Below are positions 663 to 60,652 of a stretch of DNA of 64,000 nucleotides, piece by piece. Below the pieces are notes generated by a model. The model saw nothing but the letters and a program-made list of their open reading frames with translations. It was not told the origin of the DNA and searched no databases. The DNA is from Macrostomum lignano (lineage: Eukaryota), in the NCBI GenBank assembly GCA_002269645.1, contig NIVC01003082.1, positions 56,815-120,814 on the forward strand. The letters run 5' to 3'. A program made the translations under genes and the position numbers. Position 1 is the first letter of the stretch. Each line of letters begins with the position of its first letter.

Positions 663-3600
663 ATGACGACAAAAGCGTACCTTAACGTCGTTTTGGTTGG
701 TAGCATTTTACTGGCGGTGCTAATGAACGCCTCCGATGCCAGACCAGCCGCTTTCAATGCTCCATCGAACCACTATAATTGGCTATCTAGCAGTGGCAGA
801 CTGCAGGGACTTGAGTGCTCGCTGTGCAAAGACTTTGTAGCTCTGGTCAGAAAAGCCCTGGACTCCGGTGGTGAGGCCAGGATAAGCTTTTTTTAACGAA
901 AACTTTAAATTGTAAAATATTTATTGTTGGATATTTACATGTCCAACGTCTGTAAAGCTGTGTCATAAACCGATTCCGTCATACATTCACATGAGCCCAA
1001 AAATTTCCCTTAGCACTACACGTAACGCTGGAAAGTTCTGAACTATTTTAAACACAGTGTCCTGAACTGTCTTCTTTGAGAGCATTCATTAAACATTCCT
1101 TGAACATTAAGTTTTGAATTGTCTTCTTTGAGAACATCATGCATTCTCCAGACAGCAGCAACAAACATGTTTTGTCTTGAACATTGCAACTTTTGTTTAC
1201 ATTTGCAGAGTCCAGCTACGTCCCTGAAATAGCCAAACTAGTCTGCATCATCAAGTACAAGGAGGCTGCGCAAGTGTGCGACGGTGTTGTCACCCTGTGG
1301 CGGGTAAGGCAGTCTGTTTTGCTTTTTATTAGGTCTTTCAACACCTGGCTCAGCATGACCTTTTCATGGTAACATCTTCAAAAGCCAGTCATTTACTTAA
1401 CGCATTCCGTGCAGCCAATCTTCAAGTTCGCCATAGACAAGGTGTACCTATCACCCGAGAATGTCTGCGGCCAGTATCTGGGCAGCGGCTGCTCAAACTC
1501 AACCATACCGGAGCTCAACTACTACTGGAATGTGACCCTGCCGAGTGTGCCTAAGCCGCCTGTGACACCCATTCAGCCACCGACTCCGGGGGCTCGACGA
1601 CTTCGAGTTGCTCACATTAGCGACGTGCACGTGGACATGCTGTACAAGGTTGGGGCCAGTGCCGACTGCGGGCTGCCGACTTGCTGCAGGGTCAGCGACG
1701 GAGATCCGAGTGAGAGCTGTTTGCGTTGGAGCTGTTCGGTAGCTTGTGTTGGAGCTGTTCGGTAGTTTGTGTTAGAGCTGTTCGGTAGTTTGTGTTAGAG
1801 CTGTCTGGTTAGTTTGTGTTGGAGCTGTTCGGTAGTTTGTGTTGGAGCTGTTCGGTAGTTTGTGTTAGAGCTGTTCGGTAGTTTGTGTTAGAGCTGTCTG
1901 GTTAGTTTGTGTTGGAGCTGTTCGGTAGTTTGTGTTGGAGCTGTTCGGTAGTTTGTGTTGGAGCTGTTCTGTAGTTTGTATTGGAGCTTTACTGTAGTTT
2001 GTGTTGGAGCTGTTCGGTAGTTTGTGTTGGAGCTGTTCGGTAGTTAGTGTTGTAGCTGTTCGGTAGTTTGTGTTGGAGCTGTTCGGTAGTTTGTGTTAGA
2101 GCTGTCTGGTTAGTTTGTGTTGGAGCTGTTCGGTAGTTTGTGTTGGAGCTGTTCGGTAGTTTGTGTTGGAGCTGTTTGGTAGTTTGTGTTGGAGCTGTTT
2201 GGTAGTTTGTGTTGGAGCTGTTCGGTAGTTTGTGTTGGAGCTGTTCGGTAGTTTGTGTTGGAGCTGTTCGGTAGTTTGTGTTAGAGCTGTCTGGTTAGTT
2301 TGTGTTGGAGCTGTTCGGTGGTTTGTATTGGAGCTTTACTGTAGTTTGTGTTGGAGCTGTTCGGTAGTTTGTGTTGGAGCTGTTCGGTAGTTTGTGTTGG
2401 AGCTGTTTGGTAGTTTGTGTTGGAGCTGTTTGGTAGTTTGTGTTGGAGCTGTTCGGTAGTTTGTGTTGGAGCTGTTCGGTAGTTTGTGTTGGAGCTGTTC
2501 GGTAGTTTGTGTTAGAGCTGTCTGGTTAGTTTGTGTTGGAGCTGTTCGGTGGTTTGTATTGGAGCTTTACTGTAGTTTGTGTTGGAGCTGTTCGGTAGTT
2601 TGTGTTGGAGCTGTTCTGTAGTTTGTATTGGAGCTTTACTGTAGTTTGTGTTGGAGCTGTTCGGTAGTTTGTGTTGGAGCTGTTCGGTAGTTAGTGTTGT
2701 AGCTGTTCGGTAGTTTGTCTTGGAGCTGTTCGGTGGTTTGTATTGGAGCTTTACTGTAGTTTGTGTTGGGGCTGTTCGGTGGTTTGTGTTGGAGCTTTTA
2801 TGTCGTTTGTGTTAGAGCTGTTTGGTAGTTTGTGTTAGAGCTGTTTGGTAGTTCGTGTTGGAGCTGTTCGGTAGTTTGTGTTGGAGCAGTTTGGTAGTTT
2901 GTGTTGTAGCTGTTCGGTAGTTTGTGTTGGAGCTGTTCGGTAGTTTGTGTTGGAGCTGTTCGGTAGTTTGTGTTGGAGCAGTTTGGTAGTTTGTGTTGTA
3001 GCTGTTCGGTAGTTTGTGTTGGAGCTGTTCGGTAGTTTGTGTTGGAGCTGTTCGGTAGTTTGTATTGGAGCTTTACTGTAGTTTGTGTTGGAGCTGTTCG
3101 GTAGCTTGTGTTGGAGCTATTCGGTAGTTGTGTTGGAGCTGTTCGGTAGTTTGTGTTGGAGCTGTCTGGTAGTTTGTGTTGGAACTGTTCGGTACCTTGG
3201 GTTGGACCTGCTGAAATCAGAAAAGTACATTTAGCTTTAAAGTTATTACCATGGTAATTCCACGGTATTTCCATACTGTCTCAAATCGAATCACCCAGGC
3301 ACGTCAAAGCGCAGAGCGGCTTACTGGGGCGACTACAACTGCGACCTTCCTTGGTGGTCCTTGGATCGAATCTTCAGCCAATTGAATCGCACAGAGAAGG
3401 TCTAGCATGCAAAATTTTGTCTTTTAATGTTAACTAATGTTCTTCTAAGACACCTACCTGTCTAAAAGACGCGGTATACTTCCTTTCTTAAGATAAACTT
3501 ATTACTGATGCAAATTTTCTCACTTCCAATCCTGTCAGTTCGACGCCATCTATTTCACGGGCGACCTTCCCGACCATCACGTGTGGGAGCAGACTCGGGA

Positions 3601-7457: not shown

Positions 7458-8162
7458 ATGAAAACAAAACAACTGCTTCGACTGACCCTGGCTGCCGGGC
7501 TGGCGGCCCTCGCCTCTGCCGCCTGCGTCGCTCCGTTTATCGACAGGCTGGGCAGCTGCGTCTTCATCGGCGACAACCCCAGCGTTTCCAGCTGGTGCGA
7601 CGCAGCCAGACTGTGCCTGGGCATCGGCGGAGAGCTGCTGATGGACCTGACTGCCATCCGAGCTGTCAATCACTGGAATGATACTTACTTCATCGGAGTG
7701 ACGGACCTCCTGGTTGAGTCGGGCACGTCTCGCAGCGGTTGGAGATTCGCCAACGGCTCGCTGTTTCCGATTTTGGATAACAGCGACTGGAAGACCGGCT
7801 TACCGAACAGCCTAACGGAAGATGATGACTTTGTAGCTGTCAGCAAGGCTGGCTTGCGAGACAGAGAAGCGAATTTGGACAAAAAATTCATCTGCCAGCC
7901 GATCGCGACGCCGAACAGCAAGTACCTGGAGCGAGCGGAGTTCCTGAGGCTGGGCAACATCAGTCCTGTCTACTGCTACACTGACGCCTCGGTGAGCTCG
8001 GAGCTTCACTGCCTGTGGCTCTGCGTGCAGCGCTGGGAGTGCCGGGCCGTCCTGTTCAACCGGGCCAGCGGCGCCTGCCGCATGCTGGACTTCGCTGATT
8101 CGAGCGTCGGCGACGCCATCGAGACCGACCCGAGCTGGGCCAAGTTTGTCAAGAAGTATTAA
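7458..8162 (+). CDS. Secreted C-type lectin-like domain + PAN/Apple domain protein, copy 1 (234 aa, single coding exon)
   Basis: Hydrophobic signal peptide; CTLD pattern C..F...GSC.F......W.DA...C...GG.L / FIGVTD / W..G.PN / FICQ; PAN pattern C...V.S...C...C.....C.AV.F....G.C. Confidence 0.85.
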   Translation: MKTKQLLRLTLAAGLAALASAACVAPFIDRLGSCVFIGDNPSVSSWCDAARLCLGIGGELLMDLTAIRAVNHWNDTYFIGVTDLLVESGTSRSGWRFANGSLFPILDNSDWKTGLPNSLTEDDDFVAVSKAGLRDREANLDKKFICQPIATPNSKYLERAEFLRLGNISPVYCYTDASVSSELHCLWLCVQRWECRAVLFNRASGACRMLDFADSSVGDAIETDPSWAKFVKKY

Positions 8163-9225
8163 ACAATAGCGAGCGTAACTTCAACTGGACTTCATTTGGC
8201 CTCGATCTGATTAACGTCTTGGATGACTTAAAAGTCTTGGATGACTTAAAAGTCTTGGATGACACTGATTAGAACTTTCAATTTAAAAACACGACCAGAC
8301 CAAAGTGCAGCCTATAATTATATGCTAATTTAGTTTCCCTAATTTTACCAGAAACTGATAATTGACATTAAAAGCGTATTCGAAAGTTCGAGCTTTGAAT
8401 CGCCGCGATCTATGCGGACTCTAAGCAACTGCAGGAGCTACCGGCAGCTCATCTCAGCCTGCAGTATCTCTAACAAAAGCCTCTCAATGTCTTTTACCAT
8501 CGACTCTATCTCCTAATCCTATTTCTTGAGAGGATGTCAAGAAAAAAGCAAGCTTTCTCCTGACATGGAAGCTGGCAATGCAAGTATTGATTGATGCCGC
8601 GAGATAACATACAATGCCAAACCTGTACTAATATCACCTGCGGCCTAAAAATTTTTCTCACAAAGCTGTTACAAAGAAAGGATGAGAAACAAGGAAAGCT
8701 CGTTAGGTTTTGGCAAAGCTAGTTAGTTATGTTTTGAGAAGTCTCTCATGGCAACAGGTGCGCTTGTTCAGACGTATGGTATACGCATGCTGAAAACTAG
8801 AGAAAAGACAGTAAAAAACGTATCGAAAAGCAGTCTGTTTCGCTGTTTCGTAGAAGAGATGGAAAACGGAAAAAAGACCGACAACTTAAGGAATATAACA
8901 AATAGCTGAACTTTTTACACCACTTTGGCAAGTTAGATACTCGTTAGGATAGTCGGCTTTGTAAATATACTATTTGCTATCTGTGTTTCACTGCCTGCAT
9001 CTAGCTCGTACTATGCATACTAAAAGTTACAACCTAAAAAACCATGGATAGCCAAGATTTCATTCATATAAAAAACCAAGCAGCAGTCGTCATAAGACCA
9101 ATCCTTTAGGGGCATCAAAATTGTATGGAATTGCCTGAACTTTGTAGCATTTGCGATTACGAAAAGCTTGTAATATAGTCTATATAATATTACACACAGG
9201 ACAAGCAAGGGAGTTTCTCAATTAG

Positions 9226-9933
9226 TCAGTACACCTTGACGAACTTGGCCCAGCTCGGGTCGGTCTCGATGGCGTCGCCGACGCTCGAGTCAGCGAAGTC
9301 CAGCATGCGGCAGGCGCCGCTGACCCGGTTGAACAGGACGGCCCGGCACTCCCAGCGCTGCACGCAGAGCCACAGGCAGCGAAGCTCCGAGCTCACCGAG
9401 GCGTCAGTGTAGCAGTAGACAGGACTGATGTTGCCCAGCCTCAGGAACTCCGCTCGCTCCAGGAACTCGCTGTTCGGCGTCGCGATCGGCTGGCAGACGA
9501 ATTTTTTGTCATGTTTCCCGGGTCTGTCTCGCAAGCCAGCTTTGCTGACCACTACAAAGTCATCGTCTTCCGTGTGGTTGTTCGGCAAGCCAGACACCCA
9601 GTCGCTGCCATCCAAAATCGGAAACAGCGAGCCGTTGGCGAATCTCCAGCCGCTTCGAGACCTGCCCGCCTCAACCAGGAGGTCCGTCACTCCGATGAAG
9701 TAAAAATCAATCCAGTGATTGGCAGCTCGGATGGCAGTCAGGTCCATCAGCAGCTCTCCGCCGATGCCCAGGCACAGTCTGGCTGCGTCGCACCAGCTGG
9801 AAACGCTGGGGTTGTCGCCGATGAAGACGCAGCTGCCCAGCCTGTCGATGAAGGGAGCGACGCAGGCGCTAGAGACAAGGGCAGTCAGTCCGGCAGCCAA
9901 GAAGCTCAGCTGGGCAAGTCGTCTTGCTGCCAT
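9226..9933 (-). CDS. CTLD + PAN/Apple protein, copy 2 (235 aa)
   Basis: Intact ORF, near-identical to copy 1 outside the signal peptide and variable loop. Confidence 0.85.
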   Translation of the reverse strand: MAARRLAQLSFLAAGLTALVSSACVAPFIDRLGSCVFIGDNPSVSSWCDAARLCLGIGGELLMDLTAIRAANHWIDFYFIGVTDLLVEAGRSRSGWRFANGSLFPILDGSDWVSGLPNNHTEDDDFVVVSKAGLRDRPGKHDKKFVCQPIATPNSEFLERAEFLRLGNISPVYCYTDASVSSELRCLWLCVQRWECRAVLFNRVSGACRMLDFADSSVGDAIETDPSWAKFVKVY

Positions 9934-10212
9934 TGTGCGTCAGTTCAAATATTTTAGTCCGGTAGAGTTGTTATTTAACCAAGAAATTTCTATTGCACGA
10001 TTATAAAATTTATCCTTACAATGGGACCGAAAAAATGGATGCGTTGAACCAATGAAAGAAAACGTACAATTGCAGGCTGGTTGCAGCTGATTGGTTGCTG
10101 CAGCCTGTTGTGAAGTGTAAGTGAGCTCCACTCATTAGCTCGTACTACTAAATGATTTGGTTGAGTCGTTAAGGGAATGCTATGCACGTGGTTTGTTAGA
10201 TGTGCATGCGTG

Positions 10213-10356
10213 AGGGTTGCAGTCTAGTGGTCAGAGCGTCTTGCACACGATGGAAAGGTCGGGGATTCGATTCTCGTCGCACTTGGAACAATTTGCGTCC
10301 TTGAGAAAAGCACTTAACTCGGCATTGCTTCAGTTCACTCAGCTGTAAAATGGGTT
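10213..10356 (+). mobile_element. tRNA-derived SINE (A/B-box head plus conserved body)
   Basis: Box-A-like tagtggtcagagc and box-B-like ggattcgattc, followed by gtccttgagaaaagcacttaac...cagttcactcagctgtaaaatggg, resembling the conserved central domain of widespread metazoan SINEs (from memory of consensus). Confidence 0.65.
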
Positions 10357-11062
10357 CAGATGTGCCGCGCAATCAACTGCCCTGATGATTGAAAGATTTT
10401 TTAAAGTAGCGTTTAGTTACCAAGGCAAGGTTCTAAATACAGTAGAGGCACCTAGTAGACAAAAAACACAAAGAAACCGTTAATAATGTTTTAATAAAAA
10501 TTCACTTGCTACAGTATTTTCAGTAGCATCGAAGATTTTATTGTCGAAATCCTGCGGCGCTGAGACGAAGCAAATAGCGCTGAGGCAATTCTGTCCGTTC
10601 CACTGACTCCTGAGCATACAAGCGCGCCAATACTGTACCACAGGCACAGCACTCATACACACAATCGTCAGGCACTCTGTGCCTTGAGGGTTGGCCCTCA
10701 TATCTGTGAGTATGTGACAGCTGTGGCAGCTGTGGCGCGAGAGTCAGAAGCGTTCACCGCTGGGCTGCCCTGCCCCTTAAAAATGGGTATCGATGCTTAT
10801 GGCTTGATTGTTTAAACAAATGAGCTCTGTATCCAACCCACACGGAATCATTTCTGCCTCCCAACACAGGCCCGAGGACTGCGCAACCAATGAAACCCGA
10901 TATGCAGATCCCACACTGGCATCTAGGAGCCAGTAAGAGTCCCTCACTATAAGCAGGGTACGCTCTTTCATCATTGGCAAAAGATTTAAAATAAATGCAG
11001 TCCTGTTACTTTGCTGTTTCTAACTGCACCTGCATGAAGGCTAGAAAACAAATTTCGGAATA

Positions 11063-11752
11063 ATGATTCAGCCGGCTCTGATCGCTGTGCTGATTGCCAC
11101 CGCCTCCGGTCACTGCGTTGCTCCCTTCATCGACAGGCTGGGCAGCTGCGTCTTCATCGGCGAAAACCCCAGCGTTTCCAGCTGGTGCGACGCAGCCAGA
11201 CTGTGCCTGAGCATCGGCGGAGAGCTGCTGATGGACCTGACTGCCATCCGAGCTGCCAATCACTGGAATGATACTTATTTGATCGGAGTGACGGACCTCC
11301 TGGTTGAGGCGGGCACGTCTCGCAGCGGTTGGAGATTCGCCAACGGCTCGCTGTTTCCGACTTTGGATGACAGCGACTGGGTGTCTGGCTTACCGAACAG
11401 CCTAACGAAAGATGACGACTTTTTATCTGTCAGCAAAGCTGGCTTGCGGGACAGACGACCGAATTGGGACAACACATTCGTCTGCCAGCCGATCGCGACG
11501 CCGAACAGCAAGTACCTGGAGCGAGCGGAGTTCCTGAGGCTGGGCAACATCAGTCCTGTCTACTGCTACACTGACGCCTCGGTGAGCTCGGAGCTTCGCT
11601 GCCTGTGGCTCTGCGTGCAGCGCTGGGAGTGCCGGGCCGTCCTGTTCAACCGGGCCAGCGGCGCCTGCCGCATGCTGGACTTCGCTGACTCGAGCGTCGG
11701 CGACGCCATCGAGACCGACCCGAGCTGGGCCAAGTTCGTCAAGAAGTACTGA
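11063..11752 (+). CDS. CTLD + PAN/Apple protein, copy 3 (229 aa)
   Basis: Intact ORF, signal peptide MIQPALIAVLIATASG. Confidence 0.85.
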   Translation: MIQPALIAVLIATASGHCVAPFIDRLGSCVFIGENPSVSSWCDAARLCLSIGGELLMDLTAIRAANHWNDTYLIGVTDLLVEAGTSRSGWRFANGSLFPTLDDSDWVSGLPNSLTKDDDFLSVSKAGLRDRRPNWDNTFVCQPIATPNSKYLERAEFLRLGNISPVYCYTDASVSSELRCLWLCVQRWECRAVLFNRASGACRMLDFADSSVGDAIETDPSWAKFVKKY

Positions 11753-12854
11753 AAACTTTCAAGATAAAAATATGACCTTTTGGATTACAGAGTATGACCT
11801 TTACATTAGAGCCACAGGCCTTAATGTAAAGAGGTGGGGGGTGTTGGTAGCTTGGGCGTTCATAGCAGCTTATGAAGGCTTTAATTCTGTATGCGCACAT
11901 GAGCACACTTTTAGACCAGCCTACAGGTAGGGTTGTTCGGGATGTCCATTTTTCGGGGTTTAGGGGTTAATTCCGATTCCGAACATCATTCGAGAACCCC
12001 TAAACCCGTCTCGCTTCCAAACCCGAACTCATGCAGCAAACCCGAAAATGCAGACATAACACGAGCTTACTTAACTGGGTCAGGGGATCAGGAAACAAGC
12101 TTATTAAAAATCTTCGTGTGCACACATCTGTTAGGTGTAATAACGTTATAAAGTGCCGCACGGCATAGCAAATTAGCCTCTAGTTTAGCTCATTGGGCTT
12201 GTTGGTCATTTTTAAGCAGCACATTTAATCAAGTTAAGTTAATTTCTATGAAAATTTAGAAAAGTTTGTACAGTCACGAAAACCCCGAAAATCCCGGTCC
12301 AAAATCCCCACACCGAACCACGAACACCGCCAGCTACGAGACACCGCACTGCTTTGCCGTTCGTTAGCTAATCGACATTCTGACAGATCATAAATGGCTT
12401 TTAACGTTTAAAATTTTAGTCGTGGAAGTTTTCTAGCTCATCGCTATATTGTCTCACGAATGAATCAACCTATCTGGCTTCTCCATGAGTCGGTAAACAG
12501 TGAGTTCAAAGTTCTTAGCTAGCTACCCTGGCGAAAAGTTACAGAAAGCTTTTAACAGGCTTTTAAAATTTCATCGATCTAGTCAGTGTAGACTTTGAAC
12601 TGCCTATCCATCTCCCACTGCTAGCAGTTCAATGGGAGAAATGTGGTGGAACTGAGAACCTTACCAAAAGCAAGTATTTACAGTAAGACAGCTAATGGAC
12701 GACACTGCATCCAAAATCGTCAATAAAGCGAGCGAAAGGCAAGCAAATATGGATTTCTGCGGCCAGTCTCACTTAGACATTGATGGATCGCAATGGCTGG
12801 AATTGTCTAGCTGTCGAAAACTAGAAAAACGTTCGCAATCTAACAGGGTACATG

Positions 12855-13740
12855 CTGCTATGGGTGCTGTGCTATGACCCCACATGCTAGGGTAGCTACT
12901 ATGGGTGCTAGGGTAGCTACTATGGGTGCTAGGGGAGCTACTATGGGTACTATGGGAGCTACTATGGGTGCTAGGGTAGCTACTATGGGTGCTAGGGTAG
13001 CTACTATGGGTGCTGGGGTAGCTACTATGGGTGCTGGGGTAGCTACTATGGGTACTAGGGGAGCTACTATGGGTGCTGGGGTAGCTACTATGGGTACTAG
13101 GGGAGCTACTATGGGTGCTAGGGGAGCTACTATGGGTGCTAGGGGAGCTACTATGGGTGCTAGGGGAGCTACTATGGGTGCTGGGGTAGCTACTATGGGT
13201 ACTAGGGGAGCTACTATGGGTGCTAGGGGAGCTACTATGGGTGCTAGGGGAGCTACTATGGGTGCTAGGGGAGCTACTATGGGTGCTAGGGGAGCTACTA
13301 TGGGTGCTAGGGGAGCTACTATGGGTGCTAGGGGAGCTATACTATAGTGTTAGGGGAGCTACTATGGGTGCTAGGGGAGCTATACTATAGTGTTAGGGGA
13401 GCTACTATGGGTGCTAGGGGAGCTATACTATAGTGTTAGGGGAGCTACTATGGGTGCTAGGGGAGCTATACTATAGTGTTAGGGGAGCTACTATGGGTGC
13501 TAGGGGAGCTATACTATAGTGTTAGGGGAGCTACTATGGGTACTAGGGGAGCTACTATGGGTGCTGGGGTAGCTACTATGGGTACTAGGGGAGCTACTAT
13601 GGGTGCTAGGGGAGCTACTATGGGTGCTAGGGGAGCTACTATGGGTGCTAGGGGAGCTACTATGGGTGCTAGGGGAGCTACTATGGGTGCTAGGGGAGCT
13701 ACTATGGGTGCTAGGGGAGCTACTATGGGTGCTAGGGGAC
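12855..13740. repeat. Minisatellite, 21-bp unit ggggagctactatgggtgcta with longer variant units
   Basis: Visible tandem copies. Confidence 0.95.
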
Positions 13741-14315
13741 CTACTGAAGGACAACAGCAGATGAATTGAGAAAAAGTCACTCGTCTACAGCCGCCATGGT
13801 TATCACTATACAAAGCGTCATACCGGAACCAGCAGATACCTCGTACAATGCAAACAGGACACGTGTTTCTGGTGAAGGTCTCAAACCTGATTCTATAGCA
13901 ACAGGACCAATATTGAGTTAACTGGTTTGGGAAAACATTTTTCATTAGAATGAAATCACAGGAGTAAATTTAGTAACAGGAGCTCAATAAAGCTAAAATT
14001 AGGGTCATAAACTTCTCAAACTTAATTCAACACTATACGCTACACGCTAGGACGGTTTAGACTTGCAAAATGTGTTTAAATATATGTGTGGCGTATAAAA
14101 TTTTTTCCTTACGATAAATTCTCAGCCGATTTTCCATTGTGACCTGGCACACGGATAATTTTCCAATTTTCGAGGTCGTATGCGCTCGTTTTTTCAGTTT
14201 TATCGAGTAATAAGAGCGTTTCAATAATTTGCAAGCCACTGTGACGAAAACACAGACAGTATATGCAAAGTTCTTCTCAGATATTGTTTCATAGAATTTC
14301 ATTCCTTAACTATTG

Positions 14316-14500
14316 TCAGTACTTCTTGACGAACTTGGCCCAGCTCGGGTCGGTCTCGATGGCGTCGCCGACGCTCGAGTCAGCGAAGTCCAGCATGCGG
14401 CAGGCGCCGCTGGCCCGGTTGAACAGGACGGCCCGGCACTCCCAGCGCTGCACGCAGAGCCACAGGCAGTGAAACTCCGAGCTCACCGAGGCGTCAGTGT
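14316..14500 (-). pseudogene. 5'-truncated CTLD-PAN fragment (PAN domain to stop only)
   Basis: 185 bp near-identical to the 3' end of the intact copies (TDASVSSEFHC...FVKKY*). Homology stops abruptly at 14500 against unrelated sequence. Confidence 0.8.
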
Positions 14501-14996
14501 GACGCTTCAGGGTGGCACAATATAGTGGCGCCAAAATGAGTGCCTGCGGCGCCAAAAAGAGTGCTGACAACACCGATTCTGAAAATAATGTACATGTAGA
14601 ATTCTTGGCTTTGCGGCCCCCACCATAAAATCCATGGCGACGTCCCTGAATTGGCATGCAAAACTTTTGGGCCGTGTTGGCAGCGTGAAATAGGGGGAAG
14701 GGTTAGCTGTAGGCGAGTATACACACCCGTCATAGGATAACGCGCTGCTGAATGGAGCTGGGACGGGCTTGCTACAAAAGAATCGGCCAAACAGATGACT
14801 TTTTAGACCCTGTCTACTCTGGATTAGCATATAATTTTTTTAAACACAATCTCTTAGAAACATTAGAGTCAGTTCCTCTGTGGCACCTTAGCGTTCGTGT
14901 ACGCCTAATTGAAACAGCTCTGTACGAGTCCCATTGGGTCATTGGGCACGACTGCGTTTCCAGTCTTATAAGTCAATCGGTGGGTATAATGAGCGT

Positions 14997-15262
14997 AATT
15001 CTAACATTTCCAACAGAAATTCTAACATTTCCAACAGAAATTCCAACATTTCCAACAGAAATTCCAACATTTCCAACAGAAATTCCAACATTTCCAACAG
15101 AAATTCCAACATTTCCAACAGAAATTCCAACATTTCCAACAGAAATTCCAACATTTCCAACAGAAATTCCAACATTTCCAACAGAAATTCCAACATTTCC
15201 AACAGAAATTCCAACATTTCCAACAGAAATTCCAACATTTCCAACAGAAATTCCAGCAGAAA
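14997..15262. repeat. Minisatellite, 21-bp unit ttccaacagaaattccaacat
   Basis: About 12 near-perfect copies. Confidence 0.95.
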
Positions 15263-15689
15263 TTAATTAACTGCGACCACGATACAATCGAGTCAGTTTT
15301 GCGCTTAAAAATGGCTATTATTCATGTACTATAATAGTTGCAATGTAGTGACTGACGCAAAGGCCGTGTGTAAGACAGCTATAGTACACACGAAATTTGC
15401 GTTTACGAGGCCCAGTATATAAAGTACAAGTTCAGGTTACAAATGCAAAGCAAGCAAGACTTTAACCAAGCCAAGCCTAGCGGTTAAGTGTGGATTTATC
15501 TTTTGGAGAATGTTTTAGACAATACCGGGCTGTACTTTGGTAAGCTTGGTCGCATTCCTGATTTAAAAATTTTTCGTAAAGGTTTTCTTATAATATGATT
15601 TCTCAAGGGCGTATCATTGAATTATTGGATCTTTGATTGAAGAAGGGCTTGGCCTAATTTGGGAAGAGTCAATTCATCTGCGCGGACAT

Positions 15690-16300
15690 CAGGGGCTTGA
15701 GCACCAGGGGCTTTAGCACCAGGGGCTTTAGCACCAGGGGCATGAGCACCAGGGGCTTTAGCACCAGGGGCTTTAGCACCAGGGGCTTTAGCACCAGGGG
15801 CTTTAGCACCAGGGGCTTTAGCACCAGGATCTTTAGCACCAGGGGCTTTAGCACCAGGGGCTTGAGCACCAGGGGCTTGAGCACCAGGGGCTTTAGCACC
15901 AGAGGCTTTAGCACCAGGGGCTTTAGCACCAGGGGCTTTAGCACCAGGGGCTTTAGCACCAGGGGCTTTAGCACCAGGGGCTTTAGCACCAGGGGCTTTA
16001 GCACCAGGGGCTTTAGCACCAGGGGCTTTAGCACCAGGGGCTTTAGCAACAGGGGCTTTAGCACCAGGGGCTTTAGCAACAGGGGCTTTAGCAACAGGGG
16101 CTTTAGCACCAGGGGCTTTAGCACCAGAGGCTTTAGCACCAGAGGCTTTAGCACCAGGGGCTTTAGCACCAGGGGCTTTAGCACCAGAGGCTTTAGCACC
16201 AGGGGCTTTAGCACCAGGGGCTTTAGCACCAGAGGCTTAGCACCAGGGGCTTTAGCACCAGAGGCTTTGGCACCAGGGGCTTGAGCACCAGCAGGGGCTT
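15690..16300. repeat. Minisatellite, 15-bp unit agcaccaggggcttt
   Basis: About 40 copies. Confidence 0.95.
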
Positions 16301-16931
16301 CAGCACTGGGGGCGCTAGAAGGGCTCTGGCCGCGCCCCTGCCTGCTTTACTCAGGAAATTTTGTGAAACGCTATAGTATAGGACTATCAAAAAGTGCATC
16401 CTGCGTGCATCAGCATTAATTAATCCATTTTGTAGAATTTTGTAGAATATAGATACTAAGTAAAACCTTGAAAACTATTTTCAAGTTAAAATTGATATGG
16501 ACTCCAGCTCCTTTCAAGACTTCAATAATAGTACCCACCTAGAGTTTCGACTGCAGACAAGAGACCGTTCAGGGAGCGAAGTTCAGTAATGTCGGAAATC
16601 GAAGTAGAAGCGTTCGACTACCTGCTTGCGTTTTCAGTAACAGCAACATTTTTTTTCAGAATGCCAAGGCATCCCCAGAGCAACTTTTGGTTCGAATACA
16701 GTTTTTAAAAAGGTACATGATCTTCAATAAAGCTCATGTCTCTCGGCCATATCATAATTAGCTCGGTTATCATAATTTATTCAAAATAAAAGTTACAATA
16801 TTAAAATTTTGTTTCGAAGTCATTCTACTGTCGGTTACTATGGCTACTTTCCCGTACAACAAGGCTTAACTGGTGGACGCGTGCCTCTTCGATGGTGCAG
16901 CGGAGGCCGAGAACCTGCGTCACTGTGCCAC

Positions 16932-17085
16932 GTTCACTGCCTGTGGCTCTGCGTGCAGCGCTGGGAGTGCCAGGCCGTTCTGTTTAACTGGGCCAGCGGC
17001 GCCTGCCGCATGCTGGACTTCGCTGACTCGAGCGTCGGCGACGCCATCGAGACCGACCCGAGCTGCATGGGCCAAGTTCGTCAAA
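16932..17085 (+). pseudogene. PAN-only CTLD-PAN fragment with a 4-bp insertion
   Basis: ttcactgcctgtggctctg...gacccgagct[gcat]gggccaagttcgtcaa; upstream sequence unrelated; frameshift before WAKFVK. Confidence 0.78.
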
Positions 17086-18368
17086 GGGCGTGCTGCTGAC
17101 TAGCTTGTAGCTTCAATAAGCATCGAGGCCTTTGAAGACCCGATGACGAAAAACAGTGATAGGTTATCCTACGAGTATATGCTTTGACGGCTTTTTATCT
17201 GGCAATAGGGTGGAAAATAGACTGGACAAAAATACGAAAATAACCTAAACTTAAATAACTTTTATTCAGCTTTTAATCCCCGTGCGATCATCATGGAGCT
17301 AAAACTACAAGTGGGAGTGACTAGCGCGTATGACATTCGTGTGTCATTCATTGTCTTGATGTTCGATTGTGCGCATGCACGGCTGCATCAATTTGTGTCT
17401 GTGCATGAAAATTGACCTACATGTACTCGTAGTATAGGGCTTGTCCTGCTACACCATCGAAACTGATCGGACCAACAGCCAAAGCACAGAGTATGTACCT
17501 CGATTGCCGATGCAAAAACTTGGATGTGTGCGCGAGCGTCATCCATTGTACACTAAGTTTTTTCGGGTTGGTGAATGTGCCTTTTATATAGGGACCTGAT
17601 ATATAGGGACCCGACGAAAGCATGACATTGTATCTTTGATTTTTCGTTCATCGGACCGAGCTCAAAAGTCATATTACTTTACTGATTTAAGTAGTATTCC
17701 TGGAAAGTAACTATGCTCAAAGTAATGTTTTCAGCCTTTATATTCGTTTTTGGTCAATATTGATTATCATTTCTATTACTGTTACTGTTTCATTATCGCC
17801 GACCCTAACCTAAACAAAATCTAACCTACAGCCTAAGCCTAAGCCTACTCCAAATACTCAGAAGTAAAAATGGGGTCAGTCAAATGGCGGTCTCCAGCCA
17901 AGATTATTCGGCGATCTGGAACAAGCCCATGCGCTTCTGACGCAAGCATGCTGAGCGCCCCATGGAAATGATTGACAGCTCATGACAGTGTTCCCAACGG
18001 ACACCCAGGGACTGGCCGGATTTGCCCAAATGCATTCACAAACTGCCATACGGAAGTTAGCTACTGTCTCCATGGATACAGAAAACACGGGAGTTAAACA
18101 GCTACAGCAGATAATTCTAGTCTAATATCTGGTCAGTTAAAACTATAGGGTAATGGTTAGGCATTGATGCTTTTTTACTGAGTTTTCCCGCACAATTCAC
18201 CAGTTTTTAATAACCAAATAGGTTCATGGCCAATGAAGACAGCTGCTTGCATCTGAAATAGCCTTAATGGCTGATTGGATGAAAATGCATTGATATCTAG
18301 ACGACTATATTAGGTTTCTCTTACACGCAGAGCTGCATAAAGCCGCAGAGTCAAGCTAGGCTGAGTCA

Positions 18369-19073
18369 ATGGCAGCTGCAGCAATGATTCAGCCGGCTCT
18401 GGTCGCAGTGCTGATTGCCACCGCCTCCGGTCACTGCGTCGCCCCCTTCATCGACAGGCTGGGCAGCTGCGTCTTCATCGGCGACAACCCCAGCGTTTCC
18501 AGCTGGTGCGACGCAGCCAGATTGTGCCTGGGCATCGGCGGAGAGCTGCTGATGGACCTGACTGCCATCCGAGCTGTCAATCACTGGAATGATACTTATT
18601 TCATCGGAGTGACGGACCTCCTGGTTGAGGCGGGCACGTCTCGCAGCGGTTGGAGATTCGCCAACGGCTCGCTGTTTCCGACTTTGGATGACGGCGACTG
18701 GATGTCTGGTTTGCCAAACTGTAAAAGTCCAGATGATGACGTTGTAGTCGTCAGCAATGGCGGATTAAAAGACAAACCGGTGAACAAAAATAAGAAATTC
18801 ATTTGCCAGCCGATCGCGACGCCGAACAGCCAGTTCCTGAAGCGAGCGGAGTTCCTGAGGCTGGGCAACATCAGTCCTGTCTACTGCTACACTGACGCCT
18901 CGGTGAGCTCGGAGTTTCACTGTCTGTGGCTCTGCGTGCAGCGCTGGGAGTGCCGGGCCGTCCTGTTCAACCGGGCCAGCGGCGCATGCCGCATGCTGGA
19001 CTTCGCTGACTCGAGCGTCGGCGACGCCATCGAGACCGACCCGAGCTGGGCCAAGTTTGTCAAGAAGTACTGA
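18369..19073 (+). CDS. CTLD + PAN/Apple protein, copy 4 (234 aa; may start at the second Met)
   Basis: Intact ORF; signal peptide shared with copy 3; most divergent variable loop. Confidence 0.85.
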   Translation: MAAAAMIQPALVAVLIATASGHCVAPFIDRLGSCVFIGDNPSVSSWCDAARLCLGIGGELLMDLTAIRAVNHWNDTYFIGVTDLLVEAGTSRSGWRFANGSLFPTLDDGDWMSGLPNCKSPDDDVVVVSNGGLKDKPVNKNKKFICQPIATPNSQFLKRAEFLRLGNISPVYCYTDASVSSEFHCLWLCVQRWECRAVLFNRASGACRMLDFADSSVGDAIETDPSWAKFVKKY

Positions 19074-20010: not shown

Positions 20011-20469
20011 CTAGAAGAACAACTAATATAAAAAGCTGGACACATCGTCCAATACTGAAATCACAGAATACTATTCTAACTCTATAGTATTCTGTGACTA
20101 AAATCTTATATATTTAACCAAATGTAAAAAACCTACCACACATGCAGTCATGACAACAGTAGCTATTTACTCTATTTGTCTTGCTTGCTGTTTTCCTTTG
20201 TTCAACAACAGAACTCGCTTCTTGCATAGCCATCAAAGTCGAACTCGCCTTCACAGATCTGCTACCAGGCCTAAAAGCCTTTCGCAGGCTTTGAGAAGAA
20301 ACCTTTTTAGTGAATAGAAGTGCGAATTGACTGAGACTTAGTCAGCAGTGGCAACCGAAATATATCAGGCCCAGCACTAACCGAGATGCAGGCAATTCGT
20401 TGTCCTAGGTTCGATAACTCGCGTCTACCTTGGAAACTACACAATCACTACTGTGTCCGGACATTTGGA

Positions 20470-20698
20470 TACAGAATATTGGAATGATCATAGTTGAGGC
20501 GAATAAGTCTTGCAGCGGCTGTGGATTTGCCAACGGCTTGCTGTGAATGGCAGCGACTAGATGTCTGGCTTGCCGAAGACTTTTTAAAGACTTTTTAGCG
20601 GTCAGCTTTAAAGGGTTGCGAGACAGACCCGGGAAACATGACAAGAAATTCATGCTTAACCTGCTCAACCGGGCCAGCGGCGCCTGCCGCATGCTGAA
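20470..20698 (+). pseudogene. Degenerate, internally deleted CTLD-PAN copy retaining the variable-loop region
   Basis: Homology to ...VEAG.SRSG.RFANG...DW.SGLP...GLRDRPGKHDKKF, joined directly to LNRASGACRML; multiple indels and stops. Confidence 0.75.
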
Positions 20699-23964: not shown

Positions 23965-25455
23965 ACTCATGAGAAGATTGACGATAAACTCGAGAAGATT
24001 GACGATAAACTCATGAGAAGATTGATTATAAACTCATGAGAAGATTGAGGATAAACTCATGAGAAGATTGATTATAAACTCATGAGAAGATTGAGGATAA
24101 ACTCATGAGAAGATTGAGGATAAACTCATGAGAAGATTGAATATAAACTCATGAGAAGATTGAGGATAAACTCATGAGAAGATTGATTATAAACTCATGA
24201 GAAGATTGATTATAAACTCATGAGAAGATTGAGGATAAACTCATGAGAAGATTGATTATAAACTCATGAGAAGATTGAGGATAAACTCATGAGAAGATTG
24301 ATTATAAACTCATGAGAAGATTGATTATAAACTCATGAGAAGATTGATTATAAACTCATGAGAAGATTGAGGATAAACTCATGAGAAGATTGATTATAAA
24401 CTCATGAGAAGATTGAGGATAAACTCATGAGAAGATTGATTATAAACTCATGAGAAGATTGATTATAAACTCATGAGAAGATTGATTATAAACTCATGAG
24501 AAGATTGAGGATAAACTCATGAGAAGATTGATTATAAACTCATGAGAAGATTGATTATAAACTCATGAGAAGATTGATTATAAACTCATGAGAAGATTGA
24601 TTATAAACTCATGAGAAGATGAATTATAAACTCATGAGAAGATTGATTATAAACTCATGAGAAGATTGAGGATAAACTCATGAGAAGATTGATTATAAAC
24701 TCATGAGAAGATTGATTATAAACTCATGAGAAGATTGATTATAAACTCATGAGAAGATTGATTATAAACTCATGAGAAGATGAATTATAAACTCATGAGA
24801 AGATGAATTATAAACTCATGAGAAGATTGATTATAAACTCATGAGAAGATGAATTATAAACTCATGAGAAGATTGATTATAAACTCATGAGAAGATTGAT
24901 TATAAACTCATGAGAAGATGAATTATAAACTCATGAGAAGATTGAGGATAAACTCATGAGAAGATTGATTATAAACTCATGAGAAGATTGACGATAAACT
25001 CATGAGAAGATGAATAAACTTATAAGAAGATTGAGGATAATCTCATGAGAAGATTGAGGATAAACTCATGAGAAGATTGACGATAAACTCATGAAAAGAT
25101 GAATAAACTTATAAGAAGATTGATTATAAACTCATGAGAAGATGAATAAACTTATAAGAAGATTGAGGATAAACTCATGAGAAGATTGATTATAAACTCA
25201 TGAGAAGATTGACGATAAACTCATGAGAAGATGAATAAACTTATAAGAAGATTGATTATAAACTCATGAGAAGATTGATTATAAACTCATGAGAAGATGG
25301 ATTAGAAACTCATTGGAAGATGAATTATAAACTCATGAGAAGATGGATTATAAACTCATGAGAAGATGGATTATAAACTCATGAGAAGATTGAGGATAAA
25401 CTCACGAGAAGATTGAGGATAAAATTATGAGAAGATTGAGGATAAACGCGTGAGA
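23965..25455. repeat. Minisatellite, 23-bp unit aaactcatgagaagattgattat
   Basis: About 64 copies; contains the palindrome ctcatgag. Confidence 0.95.
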
Positions 25456-25959
25456 GATTTATGCTCATAAATATAATACGTTAAAAGTGGAAAAAGAATA
25501 CTAAAACGAATTTAAAAAATATATAAAGATGAGTTAGAATTCGAAATGATTAAATAAAAATGGCTACAACAGACAAACAGTGAGGTTGCAATATTTAGGC
25601 AACTCTGAAAAAAAAGCAGCTCTTTCCAGGCTTCACAGAGCATTGAAATAAATTTAACAGTTCTATTGATTATTTAACAGGTAGATTCACATTGCAAAGT
25701 AAAATTTGCACAAATGGGATGGTTTAACAATGGTTTTTTAGCTGCTAATTTTAATAGTTTATAAATGAATAAATTTTTTGCCGTAACTGATAGATATAAA
25801 CTAAGCTATTTACAAGCGCACAGTCAGGCATATAACATAGGACAGCTCTATATTAATGCAATTTTGCTGCAAAAACTGGGTTTCGATTTTTAAACACAAA
25901 AATACTGAGAAAAGAAAATAACAAATACAGGTGTGAGAGATGAGAAGGGCGAGATGGGG

Positions 25960-26832: not shown

Positions 26833-29800
26833 TCATTTTGTCACGTTTCCATTGGCAGCATCGGTCTCGGCCCCGGCGTCGTCAATATCCTCATCGCAGT
26901 CCATATCGGAGCCGTTTGAAATCGACAATCTCAGTCGCTTCATATCCGCCGCATGTTGGTTCGCCTTGCTCTCAGCTTCTTCCTCATCCTGCTTGATTGC
27001 GTCATCATTGTTGTCGGTCTCCTCTCTGGTGGTCTCCAGCTGGCAGGCAAGCGTTTGACTGTTCCGTTTTAATAGGCGCCGATCCGTGGGCGATGAAGCA
27101 CCGGATGCTGGGCTGGTGTGTCTCAGCCTGGCGATGTCATTTTGGTTGGGAGAGCGTTCGCGCCAGTTTAAACTGATTACTTTACATTAATGAAGTTTAA
27201 ACCGCTAAAAGTCGATCACTACTTAAAACAAAAAGGATAAGTAAAATTTTTGTTTGATTGGTGGGTCAACGGTCTCAAGTGTGTGAGTCACCATTCTGAT
27301 CGGTGGGTCAATGGTCTTAAGTGCGTGGGTCACCATTCTGATCGGTGGGTCAACGGTCTCAAGTGTGTGGGTCACCATTCTGATCGGTGGGTCAACGGTC
27401 TTAAGTGCGTGGGTCACCATTCTGATCGGTGGGTCAACGGTCTCAAGTGTGTGGGTCACCATTCTGATCGGTGGGTCAACGGTCTCAAGTGTGTGAGTCA
27501 CCATTCTGATCGGTGGGTCAACGGTCTCAAGTGTGTGAGTCACCATTCTGATCGGTGGGTCAATGGTCTTAAGTGCGTGGGTCACCATTCTGATCGGTGG
27601 GTCAACGGTCTCAAGTGTGTGAGTCACCATTCTGATCGGTGGGTCAATGGTCTTAAGTGCGTGGGTCACCATTCTGATCGGTGGGTCAACGGTCTCAAGT
27701 GTGTGGGTCACCATTCTGATCGGTGGGTCAACGGCTTTAAGTGTGTGGGTCACCATTCTGATCGGTGCGTCAACGGTCTCAAGTGTGTAGGTCACCATTC
27801 TGATCGGTGGGTCAATGGTCTTAAGTGCGTGGGTCACCATTCTGATCGGTGGGTCAACGGTCTCAAGTGTGTGAGTCACCATTCTGATCGGTGGGTCAAT
27901 GGTCTTAAGTGCGTGGGTCACCATTCTGATCGGTGGGTCAACGGTCTCAAGTGTGTGGGTCACCATTCTGATCGGTGGGTCAACGGCTTTAAGTGTGTGG
28001 GTCACCATTCTGATCGGTGCGTCAACGGTCTCAAGTGTGTAGGTCACCATTCTGATCGGTGGGTCAACGGTCTCAAGTGTGTGGGTCACCATTCTGATCG
28101 GTGGGTCAACGGCTTTAAGTGTGTGGGTCACCATTCTGATCGGTGCGTCAACGGTCTCAAGTGTGTAGGTCACCATTCTGATCGGTGGGTCAATGGTCTT
28201 AAGTGCGTGGGTCACCATTCTGATCGGTGGGTCAACGGTCTCAAGTGTGTGAGTCACCATTCTGATCGGTGGGTCAATGGTCTTAAGTGCGTGGGTCACC
28301 ATTCTGATCGGTGGGTCAACGGTCTCAAGTGTGTGGGTCACCATTCTGATCGGTGGGTCAACGGCTTTAAGTGTGTGGGTCACCATTCTGATCGGTGCGT
28401 CAACGGTCTCAAGTGTGTAGGTCACCATTCTGATCGGTGGGTCAACGGTCTCAAGTGTGTGGGTCACCATTCTGATTGATGGGTCAACGATCTCAAGTGC
28501 GAGGGTCGATGTGTCAAAGATCCAAACTATGGGTCAAGAATCAAGATTTCAGTTGATGGAACGGACGGGATTTTAATCGGTGAGTTAGGGTCAAAATTTT
28601 AGTTAAACAAAATTTTCACTTTTAAAGAACTTTTTGATGCACTTATTTACAATATATAAAAGATCCATACCACCAAAAATAAAAATACATTAACCAGTAA
28701 AATATATAGATAGCAAAACCACCGTGAATTGCGTTTCGCACTAAGGTTTTAAAAAATGATTGCATTGTACTCGTAGTTTAAGCAGGACCGAACATAGGGC
28801 ATAAAAATAGCAGCACTCAAAACCACCAGTGCGCATCAAGTAAAACTGCAGCTACAATATAAATTACACCGTCTGGTGACTTTAAAGGCACAAAAAGCCG
28901 ATACACACACCCCTTAGCACAGCCATTGCTGACTGTGCTAACTGTAGTTGAACTTGCTGAAACATTAGGACTCCTTTGCTGCGCATGCGGTTCACCCGGC
29001 GGAGTTGGCGGTCTCAAACGAGGACGTTTGGCCTTTTGCATGGCAACACTGGGTGGAAACGGCGCACCGTGTTTAAAAGGCGATTGTAGGACAGGATTTG
29101 AGGAGGTTCTAGGACAGGATTAGGGGAGATTCTAGGGCAGGATTAGGGGAGGTTCTAGGGCAGGATTAGGGGAGGTTCTAGGGCAGGATTAGGGGAGGTT
29201 CTAGGGCAGGATTAGGGGAGGTTCTAGGGCAGGATTAGGGGCGATTCTAAGGCAGGATTAGAGAGATTCTAGGGCAGGATTAGGGGAGGTTCTAGGGCAG
29301 GACTAGGGGAGGTTCTAGGGCAGGATTAGGGGAGGTTCTAGGACAGGATTAGGGGCGATTCTAGGGCAGGATTAGGGGCGATTCTAGGGCAGGATTAGGG
29401 GAGGTTCTAGGGCAGGACTAGGGGAGGTTCTAGGGCAGGATTAGGGGAGGTTCTAGGACAGGATTAGGGGCGATTCTAGGGCAGGATTAGGGGCGATTCT
29501 AGGGCAGGATTAGGGGCGATTCTAGGGCAGGATTAGGGGAGATTCTAGGGCAGGATTAGGGGAGATTCTAGGGCAGGATTAGGGGAGGTTCTAGGACAGG
29601 ATTAGGGGCGATTCTAAGGCAGTATTAGGGGAGATTCTAGGGCAGGATTAGGGGAGATTCTAAGGCAGGATTAGGGGAGATTCTAAGGCAGGATTAGGGG
29701 AGGTTCTAGGACAGGATTAGGGGCGATTCTAAGGCAGGATTAGGGGAGATTCTAAGGCAGGATTAGGGGAGATTCTACGGCAGGATTAGGGGAGGTTCTA

Positions 29801-46573: not shown

Positions 46574-47249
46574 TTAGTACACCTTGACGAACTTGGCCCA
46601 GCTCGGGTCGGTCTCGATGGCGTCGCCGACGCTCGAGTCAGCGAAGTCCAGCATGCGGCAGGCGCCGCTGGCCCGGTTGAACAGGACAGCCCGGCACTCC
46701 CAGCGCTGCACGCAGAGCCACAGGCAGTGAAGCTCCGAGCTCACCGAGGCGTCAGTGTAGCAGTAGACAGGACTGATGTTGCCCAGCCTCAGGAACTCCG
46801 CTCGCTCCAGGTACTTGCTGTTCGGCGTCGCGATCGGCTGGCAGATGAATTTTTTGTCATGTTTGCCGGGTCTGTCTCGCAAGCCAGCTTTGCTGACCCC
46901 TACAAAGTCATCGCCAGCCAGACATCCAGTCGCTGTTATCCAACGTTGGAAACAGCGAGCCGTTGGCGAATCTCCAGCCGCTTCGAGACGTGCCCGACTC
47001 AACCAGGAGGTCCGTCACTCCGATGTAGTAAACATCGATCCAGCGGTTGACAGCTCGAATGGCAGTCAGGTCCATCAGCAGCTCTCCGCCGATGCCCAGG
47101 CACAGTCTGGCTGCGTCACACCAGCTGGAAACGCTGGGGTTGTCGCCGATGAAGACGCAGCTGCCCAGCCTGTCGATGAACGGAGCGACGCAGGCGGCAG
47201 AGACAACGACGGCCAGACAGGCGCAGAGAGTCAGACGGACCAGCTGCAT
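46574..47249 (-). pseudogene. CTLD + PAN/Apple copy 5, frameshifted by a 20-bp deletion in the variable loop
   Basis: ATG at 47249, stop at 46574. Alignment to copy 2 shows loss of 20 nt (gtcttccgtgtggttgttcg on +) near 46912; length 676 = 708 - 12 (shorter signal peptide) - 20. Confidence 0.82.
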
Positions 47250-60100: not shown

Positions 60101-60235
60101 GCTGCAATTTCTCAGTTTGCGATTTGATGCGTAAATTTTCGGACTTGCCGGTGGCGCCGTACACCTGGACGAAGATTTCGCTGTCGGCTGAGCAGCCGGT
60201 CTCGCCTGTGCTCACTCGCAGCTGCCAGTCGTACT
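51179..60235 (-). CDS. Multi-PLAT (LH2) domain protein, LOXHD1-like, about 10-11 divergent PLAT repeats; 5' end not located; one apparent 1-bp frameshift
   Basis: Exons 60235-59979, 59465-59339, 59211-58020, 57380-57168, 56489-56076, 54716-54053, 53330-52803, 52694-51853, 51727-51179. Repeated PLAT motifs (Y.V...G...AGT...VF+.L.G..G.SG; LG.L.KLR+; FPC.RW/FPARRWLD). Exon 59211-58020 is one base short of phase. Confidence 0.78.
53430..54000. repeat. Degenerate minisatellite, about 30-bp unit built on ttgggattcctcaatct (PLAT gene intron)
   Basis: Visible; rich in ggattcc/ggaattcc. Confidence 0.85.
54719..56047. repeat. Minisatellite, 24-bp unit aacaggtgtgagacttcagtgtct (PLAT gene intron)
   Basis: About 55 copies, abutting the splice acceptor. 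Confidence 0.95.
56605..56935. repeat. Minisatellite, 13-bp unit gagatacca(g/gg)(a)tt (PLAT gene intron)
   Basis: Visible tandem variants. Confidence 0.85.
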
Positions 60236-60354
60236 CTGAAGATCGTGTTGAGGATAGGTAAATTGAGAGACTACAGGTGATCTTTGATAGGTAGAGCCGC
60301 AGGTTCGAAGTGGTGAATGCAAATTTTGGCGAGGGTAACTTTGAGATTATGATT

Positions 60355-60652
60355 CTGATAGGTAAATTCCGAGAGGTATAATAGATTCCTAGAGGTAGAT
60401 TTCGAAAGGTAGATTCCGAGAGGTAGATTCCGAGAGGTAGATTCCGAGAGGTAGATTCCGAGAGGTAGATTCCGAGAGGTAGATTCCGAGAGGTAGATTC
60501 CGAGAGGTAGATTCCGAGAGGTAGATTCCGAGAGGTAGATTCCGAGAGGTAGATTCCGCGAGAGGTAGATTTCGAGAGGTAGATTTCGAGAGGTAGATTC
60601 CGAGAGGTAGATTCCGAGAGGTAGATTCCGAGAGGTAGATTCCGAGAGGTAG
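60355..60652. repeat. Minisatellite, 14-bp unit gagaggtagattcc
   Basis: About 20 copies upstream of the first located PLAT exon. Confidence 0.93.

Follow-up and report, generated by a model that had tools for sequence, protein, structure and literature searches.

The four intact genes at 7458-19073 in a 64,000-nt stretch of the genome of the flatworm Macrostomum lignano (GenBank assembly GCA_002269645.1, contig NIVC01003082.1, positions 56,815 to 120,814 of the forward strand; the whole stretch is hereafter called the window) pose a specific question. Each encodes a C-type lectin-like domain (CTLD) followed by a PAN domain, and the products are almost identical at both ends and very different in a central block. 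Has the centre changed unusually fast, or have the ends been kept unusually alike? The original prediction for this locus, made from the sequence alone, held that the scaffold and PAN domain are homogenised while the binding surface is diversified. We find that the central variable (V) block is an older segment that was spared homogenisation rather than a fast-evolving one. The explanation that we favour, with modest confidence, is that these are old CTLD-PAN duplicates subject to GC-biased conversion of their coding sequence, from which the loop block is largely exempt.

The region contains four intact single-exon open reading frames (ORFs) of 229-235 aa. The first copy, c1 (7458..8162, + strand, 234 aa; V block 7770-7892), comprises a signal-like segment (aa 1-22), the CTLD (23-148) and the PAN domain (about 166-232). 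It lies tail-to-tail with c2 (9226..9933, - strand, 235 aa; V block 9496-9618), which in turn lies head-to-head with c3 (11063..11752, + strand, 229 aa; V block 11360-11482); the fourth copy is c4 (18369..19073, + strand, 234 aa; V block 18681-18803). A self-search of the window identified a further full-length homologue, c5 (46574..47249, - strand), with a 20-nt deletion within the V block. Together with c6, a copy found in M. lignano protein records and described below, these form the set of six paralogs considered here.

The contrast between the blocks is sharp and general. The earlier residue counts for c1 against c4, namely 1 of 82 differences in the mature N-terminal (N) block, 19 of 41 in the V block and 4 of 89 in the C-terminal (C) block, were reproduced exactly, and the similar pattern reported for the segments at 9618-9496 and 11360-11482 extends to every pairing of the intact copies, six in all, with 1-6 differences in 82 residues of the N block, 11-20 in 41 of the V block and 1-6 in 89 of the C block. 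Among nucleotides, 15-34% of positions differ across the V block (c1 nt 313-435) against 2.5-3.9% across the remaining mature coding sequence, a contrast with Fisher p values of 3e-7 to 4e-21 among the intact copies. It is flanked by stretches of 23 and 27 nt that are identical in all five full-length copies of the window. In the protein the block spans aa 105-145, with its most divergent core at aa 113-142, and a second, weaker variable patch occupies aa 70-78 and 88-90. Variable positions number 27 in the V block and 12 in the N block. Compared with the window copies, c6 follows the same block pattern, with 8-11 differences in 82 residues of the N block, 19-22 in 41 of the V block and 6-8 in 86 of the C block.

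Synonymous sites date this contrast. In the constant blocks, synonymous divergence (dS) lies between 0 and 0.09; in the V block it reaches 0.18-1.5, 5-10 times that of the remainder. The most divergent V allele is that of c4 (dS 0.9-1.5 to the others), which also has the lowest third-position GC content (0.46). The ratio of nonsynonymous to synonymous divergence (dN/dS) in the V block is 0.19-0.97 and exceeds 1 in no pair. The scaffold codons within the block combine a high proportion of synonymous differences (pS 0.22-0.80) with a low nonsynonymous-to-synonymous ratio of such proportions (pN/pS 0.15-0.29), which indicates old divergence under purifying selection and thus a functional block. 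The most variable V codons give dN/dS values of 0.55-2.8, which are circular because these codons were chosen after the variation had been seen.

A control immune to conversion among the copies was provided by two relatives (P0002 and P0003) that are about 50% identical to the window copies. Divergence from these amounts to 59-71% in the V block and to 35-51% in the other blocks, an intrinsic rate excess of about 1.3-2-fold compared with the roughly 3- to 40-fold contrast among the window copies; most of the contrast therefore comes from young constant blocks. The accelerated change implied by a "diversified" binding surface was accordingly overstated in the original prediction. That prediction had itself named a dN/dS well below 1 in the loop as evidence against it; such values were obtained in the comparisons involving c4, and the other pairs were borderline.

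If the constant blocks are young, the genes themselves are not. No flank homology was found in 1 kb of 5' or 3' sequence around the copies: the copies become similar only within or at the signal segment and cease to be so after the stop codon. Since the flanks are unalignable, the duplicates must be old, despite the very low dS of their constant blocks. Sites within the genes form a mosaic: of 171 pairs of informative sites, 95 prove incompatible under the four-gamete test, and the groupings (c2,c3), (c3,c4), (c2,c5) and (c1,c5) are mutually incompatible and interleaved along the gene. Even c2 and c5, which have a common V allele, fall into different groupings elsewhere. GC content at third codon positions (GC3) reaches 0.74-0.78 in the N block and 0.90-0.93 in the C block and falls to 0.46-0.63 in the V block between them, against a flank GC content of 0.37-0.49, and it correlates negatively with divergence between paralogs (rho -0.59, p 0.005). 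Taken together, the unrelated flanks, the older V block, the mosaic sites and the GC3 pattern point to concerted evolution of the coding sequence by GC-biased ectopic gene conversion, in which the V block has been much less involved. The homogenisation of scaffold and PAN domain proposed earlier is thereby borne out by constant-block dS, mosaic sites and GC3 alike.

The very high GC3 could also be read as a sign that selection at the nucleotide level, through extreme codon usage, an RNA element or an overlapping antisense ORF, has kept the constant blocks identical without any conversion, and a 91-codon antisense ORF is indeed open in all four intact copies. We consider this very improbable. 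The mosaic of incompatible site patterns requires exchange between copies, and non-functional gene relics in the window are also 93-98% identical over their PAN pieces. Moreover, every antisense frame is largely open, which such GC3 would lead one to expect, and the antisense ORF spans the V block as well.

An assembly artefact, with alleles or homeologues collapsed or misjoined after a recent duplication of the genome, is exceedingly unlikely. A recent whole-genome duplication has been reported for M. lignano (PMC7053086), and the window is rich in minisatellites. However, a single contig holds five copies, in both orientations and with unique, mutually unrelated flanks, which disposes of the concern raised with the original prediction that the constant blocks might be collapsed sequence. 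Scattered constant-block differences also make the copies non-identical, and the sixth copy, which has the same pattern, comes from an independent M. lignano protein record.

Other origins of the block structure or of the duplicates were considered and rejected. The V block does not represent an ancestral exon, as the sole intron of a homologous Opisthorchis gene lies in the PAN domain, away from the V boundaries. The copies are not retrocopies, given that homology ends at the stop codon with no common untranslated region or poly(A). A palindromic or inverted segmental duplication was dismissed because the shared intergenic regions have no internal symmetry.

The 5' edge of the homogenised tract can be placed from the signal segments (7458-7523, 9865-9933, 11063-11113, 18369-18434 and 47184-47249). 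These are of two types, one in c1, c2 and c5 and the other in c3 and c4, and c6 has a third. Because this grouping clashes with the groupings downstream, the tract begins at the mature N-terminus. Further upstream, one or two CCAAT/ATTGG boxes lie about 60-140 nt before the starts of c2, c3, c4 and c5, in sequence that is otherwise unrelated; none is obvious upstream of c1. The boxes could be a common promoter element retained without alignable homology.

The nature of the encoded proteins bears on why one block should be exempt. The original prediction of a secreted CTLD-PAN protein agrees with the hydrophobic, signal-like N-terminal segment, the CTLD and the PAN domain found here, and the signal-like segment suggests that the proteins are secreted. 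An AlphaFold2 model derived from an alignment of 33 family sequences (pLDDT 88.4, pTM 0.83) has the CTLD fold, with beta0, beta1, alpha1, alpha2, beta2, a loop, beta3, beta4 and beta5. The top 50 Foldseek matches are all CTLDs, including the carbohydrate-recognition domains (CRDs) of CL-K1, CD23, DC-SIGN and mincle (E about 1e-6, target TM up to 0.76), and a profile of the four copies matched the SIGN-R1/DC-SIGN CRDs of the PDB over the whole domain (E 6e-4). Pfam Lectin_C is below threshold in the window copies, of which only c4 scores (13.7 bits against a cut-off of 22.6); CTLD membership consequently rests on the fold and on family-level evidence, with 23 of the 33 aligned family members matching Lectin_C at E<0.01. 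PAN_1 matches 27 of the 33 (best E 4.8e-7) and scores 21.9, 20.9, 21.4 and 23.0 bits in c1-c4 against a gathering cut-off of 21.4, with c2 just under it. The PAN/apple domain forms the C-terminal 70 residues and is modelled as a strand, a helix (182-190) and strands at 195-201, 206-211 and 227-232.

Ten cysteines are conserved in the family: C146, C185, C195 and C207 are invariant, and C23, C34, C47, C53, C173 and C189 occur in at least 90% of members. C53 and C146 align with the canonical alpha1-beta5 cysteine pair, their pairing being predicted, and C47 and C173, the two left over by elimination, might link the domains. Potential N-glycosylation sequons vary among the copies. N99-G-S and N167-I-S occur in all window copies and c6; N74-D-T (for example 7677-7685 in c1) is present in c1, c3 and c4 and lost in c2, c5 and c6; N118-H-T is found only in c2, and N107-D-T and N118-N-S in c6. 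The gains and losses fall within variable patches (aa 74-76, 107-109 and 118-120).

According to the DC-SIGN/SIGN-R1 alignment and the model, the V block starts midway through the long loop and continues through the beta3-beta4 hairpin and the beta4-beta5 loop. The original prediction had located the EPN/QPD and WND ligand-binding positions in this block. Alignment and model do place the EPN and WND positions inside it, but the motifs are degenerate and nearly invariant, and the variation adjoins them. At the EPN/QPD position (115-117), LPN is present in all four intact window copies and SPN in c6; at the WND position (133-135), LRD or LKD is found. The inner disulfide of the CTLD, from beta3 to the post-beta4 segment, is missing in the window subfamily, in which "DFV" replaces "DCV" and no cysteine occurs at 136-142, but it is kept by most members of the wider family. 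With the motifs degenerate and this disulfide lost, canonical Ca2+-dependent carbohydrate binding by the window copies appears unlikely.

The most radical variation lies directly after LPN (118-121) and directly after LRD (136-143). In DC-SIGN, the corresponding positions make secondary contacts with the ligand. Model confidence is lowest at 111-120, and the variable residues lie in loops, flanking the EPN/WND homologues by alignment. As predicted from sequence, this stretch would correspond to the ligand-contact face of canonical CTLDs, and each paralog would combine the same scaffold and PAN domain with a different predicted loop surface.

The explanation that we favour brings these observations together as follows. 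The single-exon genes would form a lineage-specific cluster in a free-living flatworm of the Macrostomum type, each encoding a small, probably secreted protein with a long-form, non-canonical CTLD followed directly by a PAN/apple domain. Ectopic, GC-biased conversion among the copies, and with the relics, would hold the copies close to identity between the mature N-terminus and the stop codon, while aa 105-145 (core 113-142) would be exchanged much less and so retain old, copy-specific sequence with a composition nearer to that of the surrounding DNA. The loop differences may confer different binding specificities, with a mode of binding that is probably not the canonical Ca2+-dependent one for sugars. 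What spares the block may be selection that favours separate specificities, perhaps aided by mismatches that hinder heteroduplex formation. A role in immunity, allorecognition or gamete recognition is only a suggestion, drawn from the sequence pattern.

Several points weigh against this explanation. A PHI-like permutation test for clustering of incompatible sites was not significant (p 0.58), the case for conversion being carried by the four-gamete failures and the block-wise dS, and conversion tracts were not delimited. High GC3 could partly reflect codon-usage selection, which leaves the drop confined to the V block unexplained. The data fall short of demonstrating positive selection on the loop: whole-block dN/dS is at most 0.97, the values of 1.1-2.8 among the most variable codons are circular, and six paralogs are too few for site models.

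The same conversion mosaic is also compatible with a simpler account of the exemption, in which the V block is the least constrained loop, accumulates replacements faster and, once diverged, blocks heteroduplex extension, after which dS accrues passively and no diversified function is involved. A V-block dN/dS of 0.19-0.97 fits relaxed constraint. The block is also the least conserved part in comparison with distant homologues (59-71% against 35-51% divergent) and has indels across the family, and c5 lost its V region through a frameshifting deletion. On the other hand, purifying selection on the V scaffold codons (pN/pS 0.15-0.29) shows that the block is functional, its boundaries are sharp and common to all copies, each of the four intact copies keeps its own V allele, and the variable positions adjoin the homologues of the EPN/WND ligand positions. 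We regard this account as possible, though the less probable. Because the block is functional, sharply bounded and on the ligand face, our preferred reading is that selection maintains differing loop alleles in different copies.

The pseudogene and gene relics of the window, together with the V allele common to c2 and c5, extend the earlier description of the cluster. In c5 the deletion junction lies near 46915/46916, and the shifted frame runs into a stop at 46910-46908, so that c5 is a probable pseudogene unless the deletion is a sequencing error; what is left of its V block matches c2 at 92-98% identity. The relic at 14320..14534 (- strand) consists only of the C-terminal part of the PAN domain, 98.3% identical to c1 nt 521-701, with homology stopping abruptly upstream. 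A second relic (16845..17084, + strand) is a degenerate PAN domain that matches c1 nt 548-695 with 93% identity over 152 nt and has a frameshift near its end. The third (20460..20696, + strand) is decayed, with stops and indels. It retains the second half of the CTLD and a piece of the PAN domain but has lost roughly c1 nt 437-590 from its interior. In the 3' half of the V block it carries the c2/c5 allele, identical at 43 of 53 positions against 33-36 of 53 for c1, c3 and c4.

Such remnants invite comparison with systems of templated diversification. Pseudogenes serve as conversion donors for chicken immunoglobulin genes, and somatic variation is reported for snail FREPs. One frameshifted copy and three relics beside four intact genes, with c5 and the relic at 20460-20696 carrying the 3' V allele of the intact c2, could be taken for V-segment donors in a programmed or somatic conversion process that adds variants beyond the germline. 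We hold this to be very unlikely: common descent explains the shared alleles equally well, two of the three relics are PAN-only and have no V segment, no further V cassettes or V-like copies were found within the window, and no mutational bias is apparent. Also unlikely, in our judgement, is a broader scheme in which the cluster would be a germline repertoire of specificities, balancing or diversifying selection would hold ancient V lineages against GC-biased homogenisation, and the pseudogene and relics would form a V reservoir for templated germline or somatic conversion, as in a cassette-type system on a CTLD-PAN scaffold.

Beyond the window, the family is hidden in public annotation. The closest database protein is an M. 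lignano entry (P0001, UniRef A0A1I8HX01) annotated as "guanylate cyclase". This model and a near-identical duplicate (P0074, A0A1I8J6T3), both from outside the window, are chimeras in which the cyclase catalytic domain is interrupted midway, immediately ahead of the "IRVGLHTGPVVAGVVG" strand, by an in-frame reading of an entire CTLD-PAN gene, c6; c6 probably sits in an intron of the cyclase gene. As the cyclase parts are absent from the window, c6 represents another locus. These chimeric models are the reason why the public annotation conceals the CTLD-PAN family.

An exhaustive search recovered 73 relatives, mostly of about 240 aa and with the same architecture. Besides P0001, the only named one is an "Apple domain-containing protein" of the liver fluke Opisthorchis felineus (CRM22_001245, P0054). 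A word-indexed protein search with c1 gave no match, and alignment queries returned only P0002/P0003 and P0051/P0054, without P0001; exact look-ups with c1 and c4 matched no contig. The two relatives used as a control, P0002 and P0003, are encoded on contigs of about 1 kb (L001 and L002) from a single JGI sample (3300040801) and come presumably from another macrostomid-like flatworm; between them, too, the V block is the most divergent part (71% against 35-38%). The CTLD-PAN family is thus at least flatworm-wide and uncharacterised. In the literature, we found no CTLD-PAN family described in Macrostomum and no match among its seminal-fluid or adhesion-protein lectins.

Compared with canonical Ca2+-dependent CRDs (DC-SIGN/SIGN-R1, CL-K1, CD23 and mincle), the window copies have the same fold, the N-terminal hairpin of the long form (C23-C34), the alpha1-beta5 cysteines (C53 and C146) and a WIGL-like "FIGVTD" strand, and their V block aligns to the EPN...WND ligand region. 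In contrast, two of the five ligand positions of Ca2+ site 2 are Leu and Arg/Lys, the disulfide between beta3 and the post-beta4 segment is missing, the domain is fused to PAN, and Lectin_C remains sub-threshold. The O. felineus protein and about 70 unnamed CTLD+PAN proteins have the signal-CTLD-PAN order, the length of about 240 aa and the cysteine framework in common with the window copies, but are only 22-33% identical to them. The Opisthorchis gene has one intron within the PAN domain and no second gene called 10 kb on either side, whereas the window genes are intronless, clustered and homogenised.

A homogenised framework around a binding region that keeps old divergence is familiar from MHC peptide-binding exons as against introns, from the NK-cell CTLD receptors Ly49/KLR and from plant NLR clusters. 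The window family resembles these in its mosaic of young framework and old binding region and in the birth-and-death relics within the cluster. It differs in that whole-block dN/dS never exceeds 1, the repertoire is small (six paralogs) and any recognition function is putative. What the locus contains is therefore an uncharacterised flatworm CTLD-PAN family with a pattern already known from other clustered binding-protein families.

A more distant parallel is provided by the variable proteins of diversity-generating retroelements (DGRs), such as Mtd and TvpA, which have a C-type-lectin fold. Here also, a constant scaffold carries variation focused on a C-type-lectin-fold binding surface; unlike the DGR proteins, in which the variable region is C-terminal, the window family is eukaryotic and germline-encoded and its V block is internal to the domain. 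A hypermutation or DGR-like mechanism was rejected, since the substitution spectrum of the V block is balanced, without adenine bias, and the V blocks of P0001 and P0074 are identical. Neither an adenine-specific pattern nor a template-like V copy was found in the window, where reverse transcriptase was not searched for.

These results carry a general caution, in that a constant-variable-constant pattern in tandem paralogs can mean young constant parts rather than a fast variable part, and dS should be checked before diversifying selection is claimed. Whatever its function, the locus is a clean, small case of concerted evolution with a GC-biased signature and one sharply delimited exempt segment, which makes it useful for studying what halts conversion tracts. 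If selection does maintain the loop divergence, the cluster would constitute a compact, uncharacterised family of predicted secreted binding proteins. Transgenesis, RNA interference and in-situ hybridisation are workable in M. lignano, so that the targets of invertebrate lectin-like repertoires are directly testable in this species.

The surroundings of the cluster are eukaryotic in character. Minisatellites are very dense. Their repeat units measure 13-46 nt, most of them 20-24, and the longest arrays reach 1.5 kb; Tandem Repeats Finder listed 45 rows at a score of at least 200. Examples are found at 1719-3210, 12885-13745, 15690-16291, 23965-25459, 27255-28507 and 54728-56048, and several lie between the lectin copies. 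A run of long ORFs at 51179-60686 (- strand; 174-532 aa) bears a repeated motif and probably represents the exons of one large repeat protein. One sub-threshold PLAT/LH2 match (20.3 bits against a cut-off of 23) was obtained there, and five of the six ORFs tested, a set that leaves out the ORF at 59790-60686, had no Pfam match. A gene for PP4R3/SMEK (protein phosphatase 4 regulatory subunit 3) occupies 30243-35519 (- strand) with at least three large exons and is identified by Pfam matches to EVH1_PP4R3 (E 1e-18) and PP4R3 (E 9e-43 and 1e-17). Minisatellites lie between its exons (31717-32306, 33178-33582 and 34110-35108), and one array falls within the 3' exon (31010-31338).

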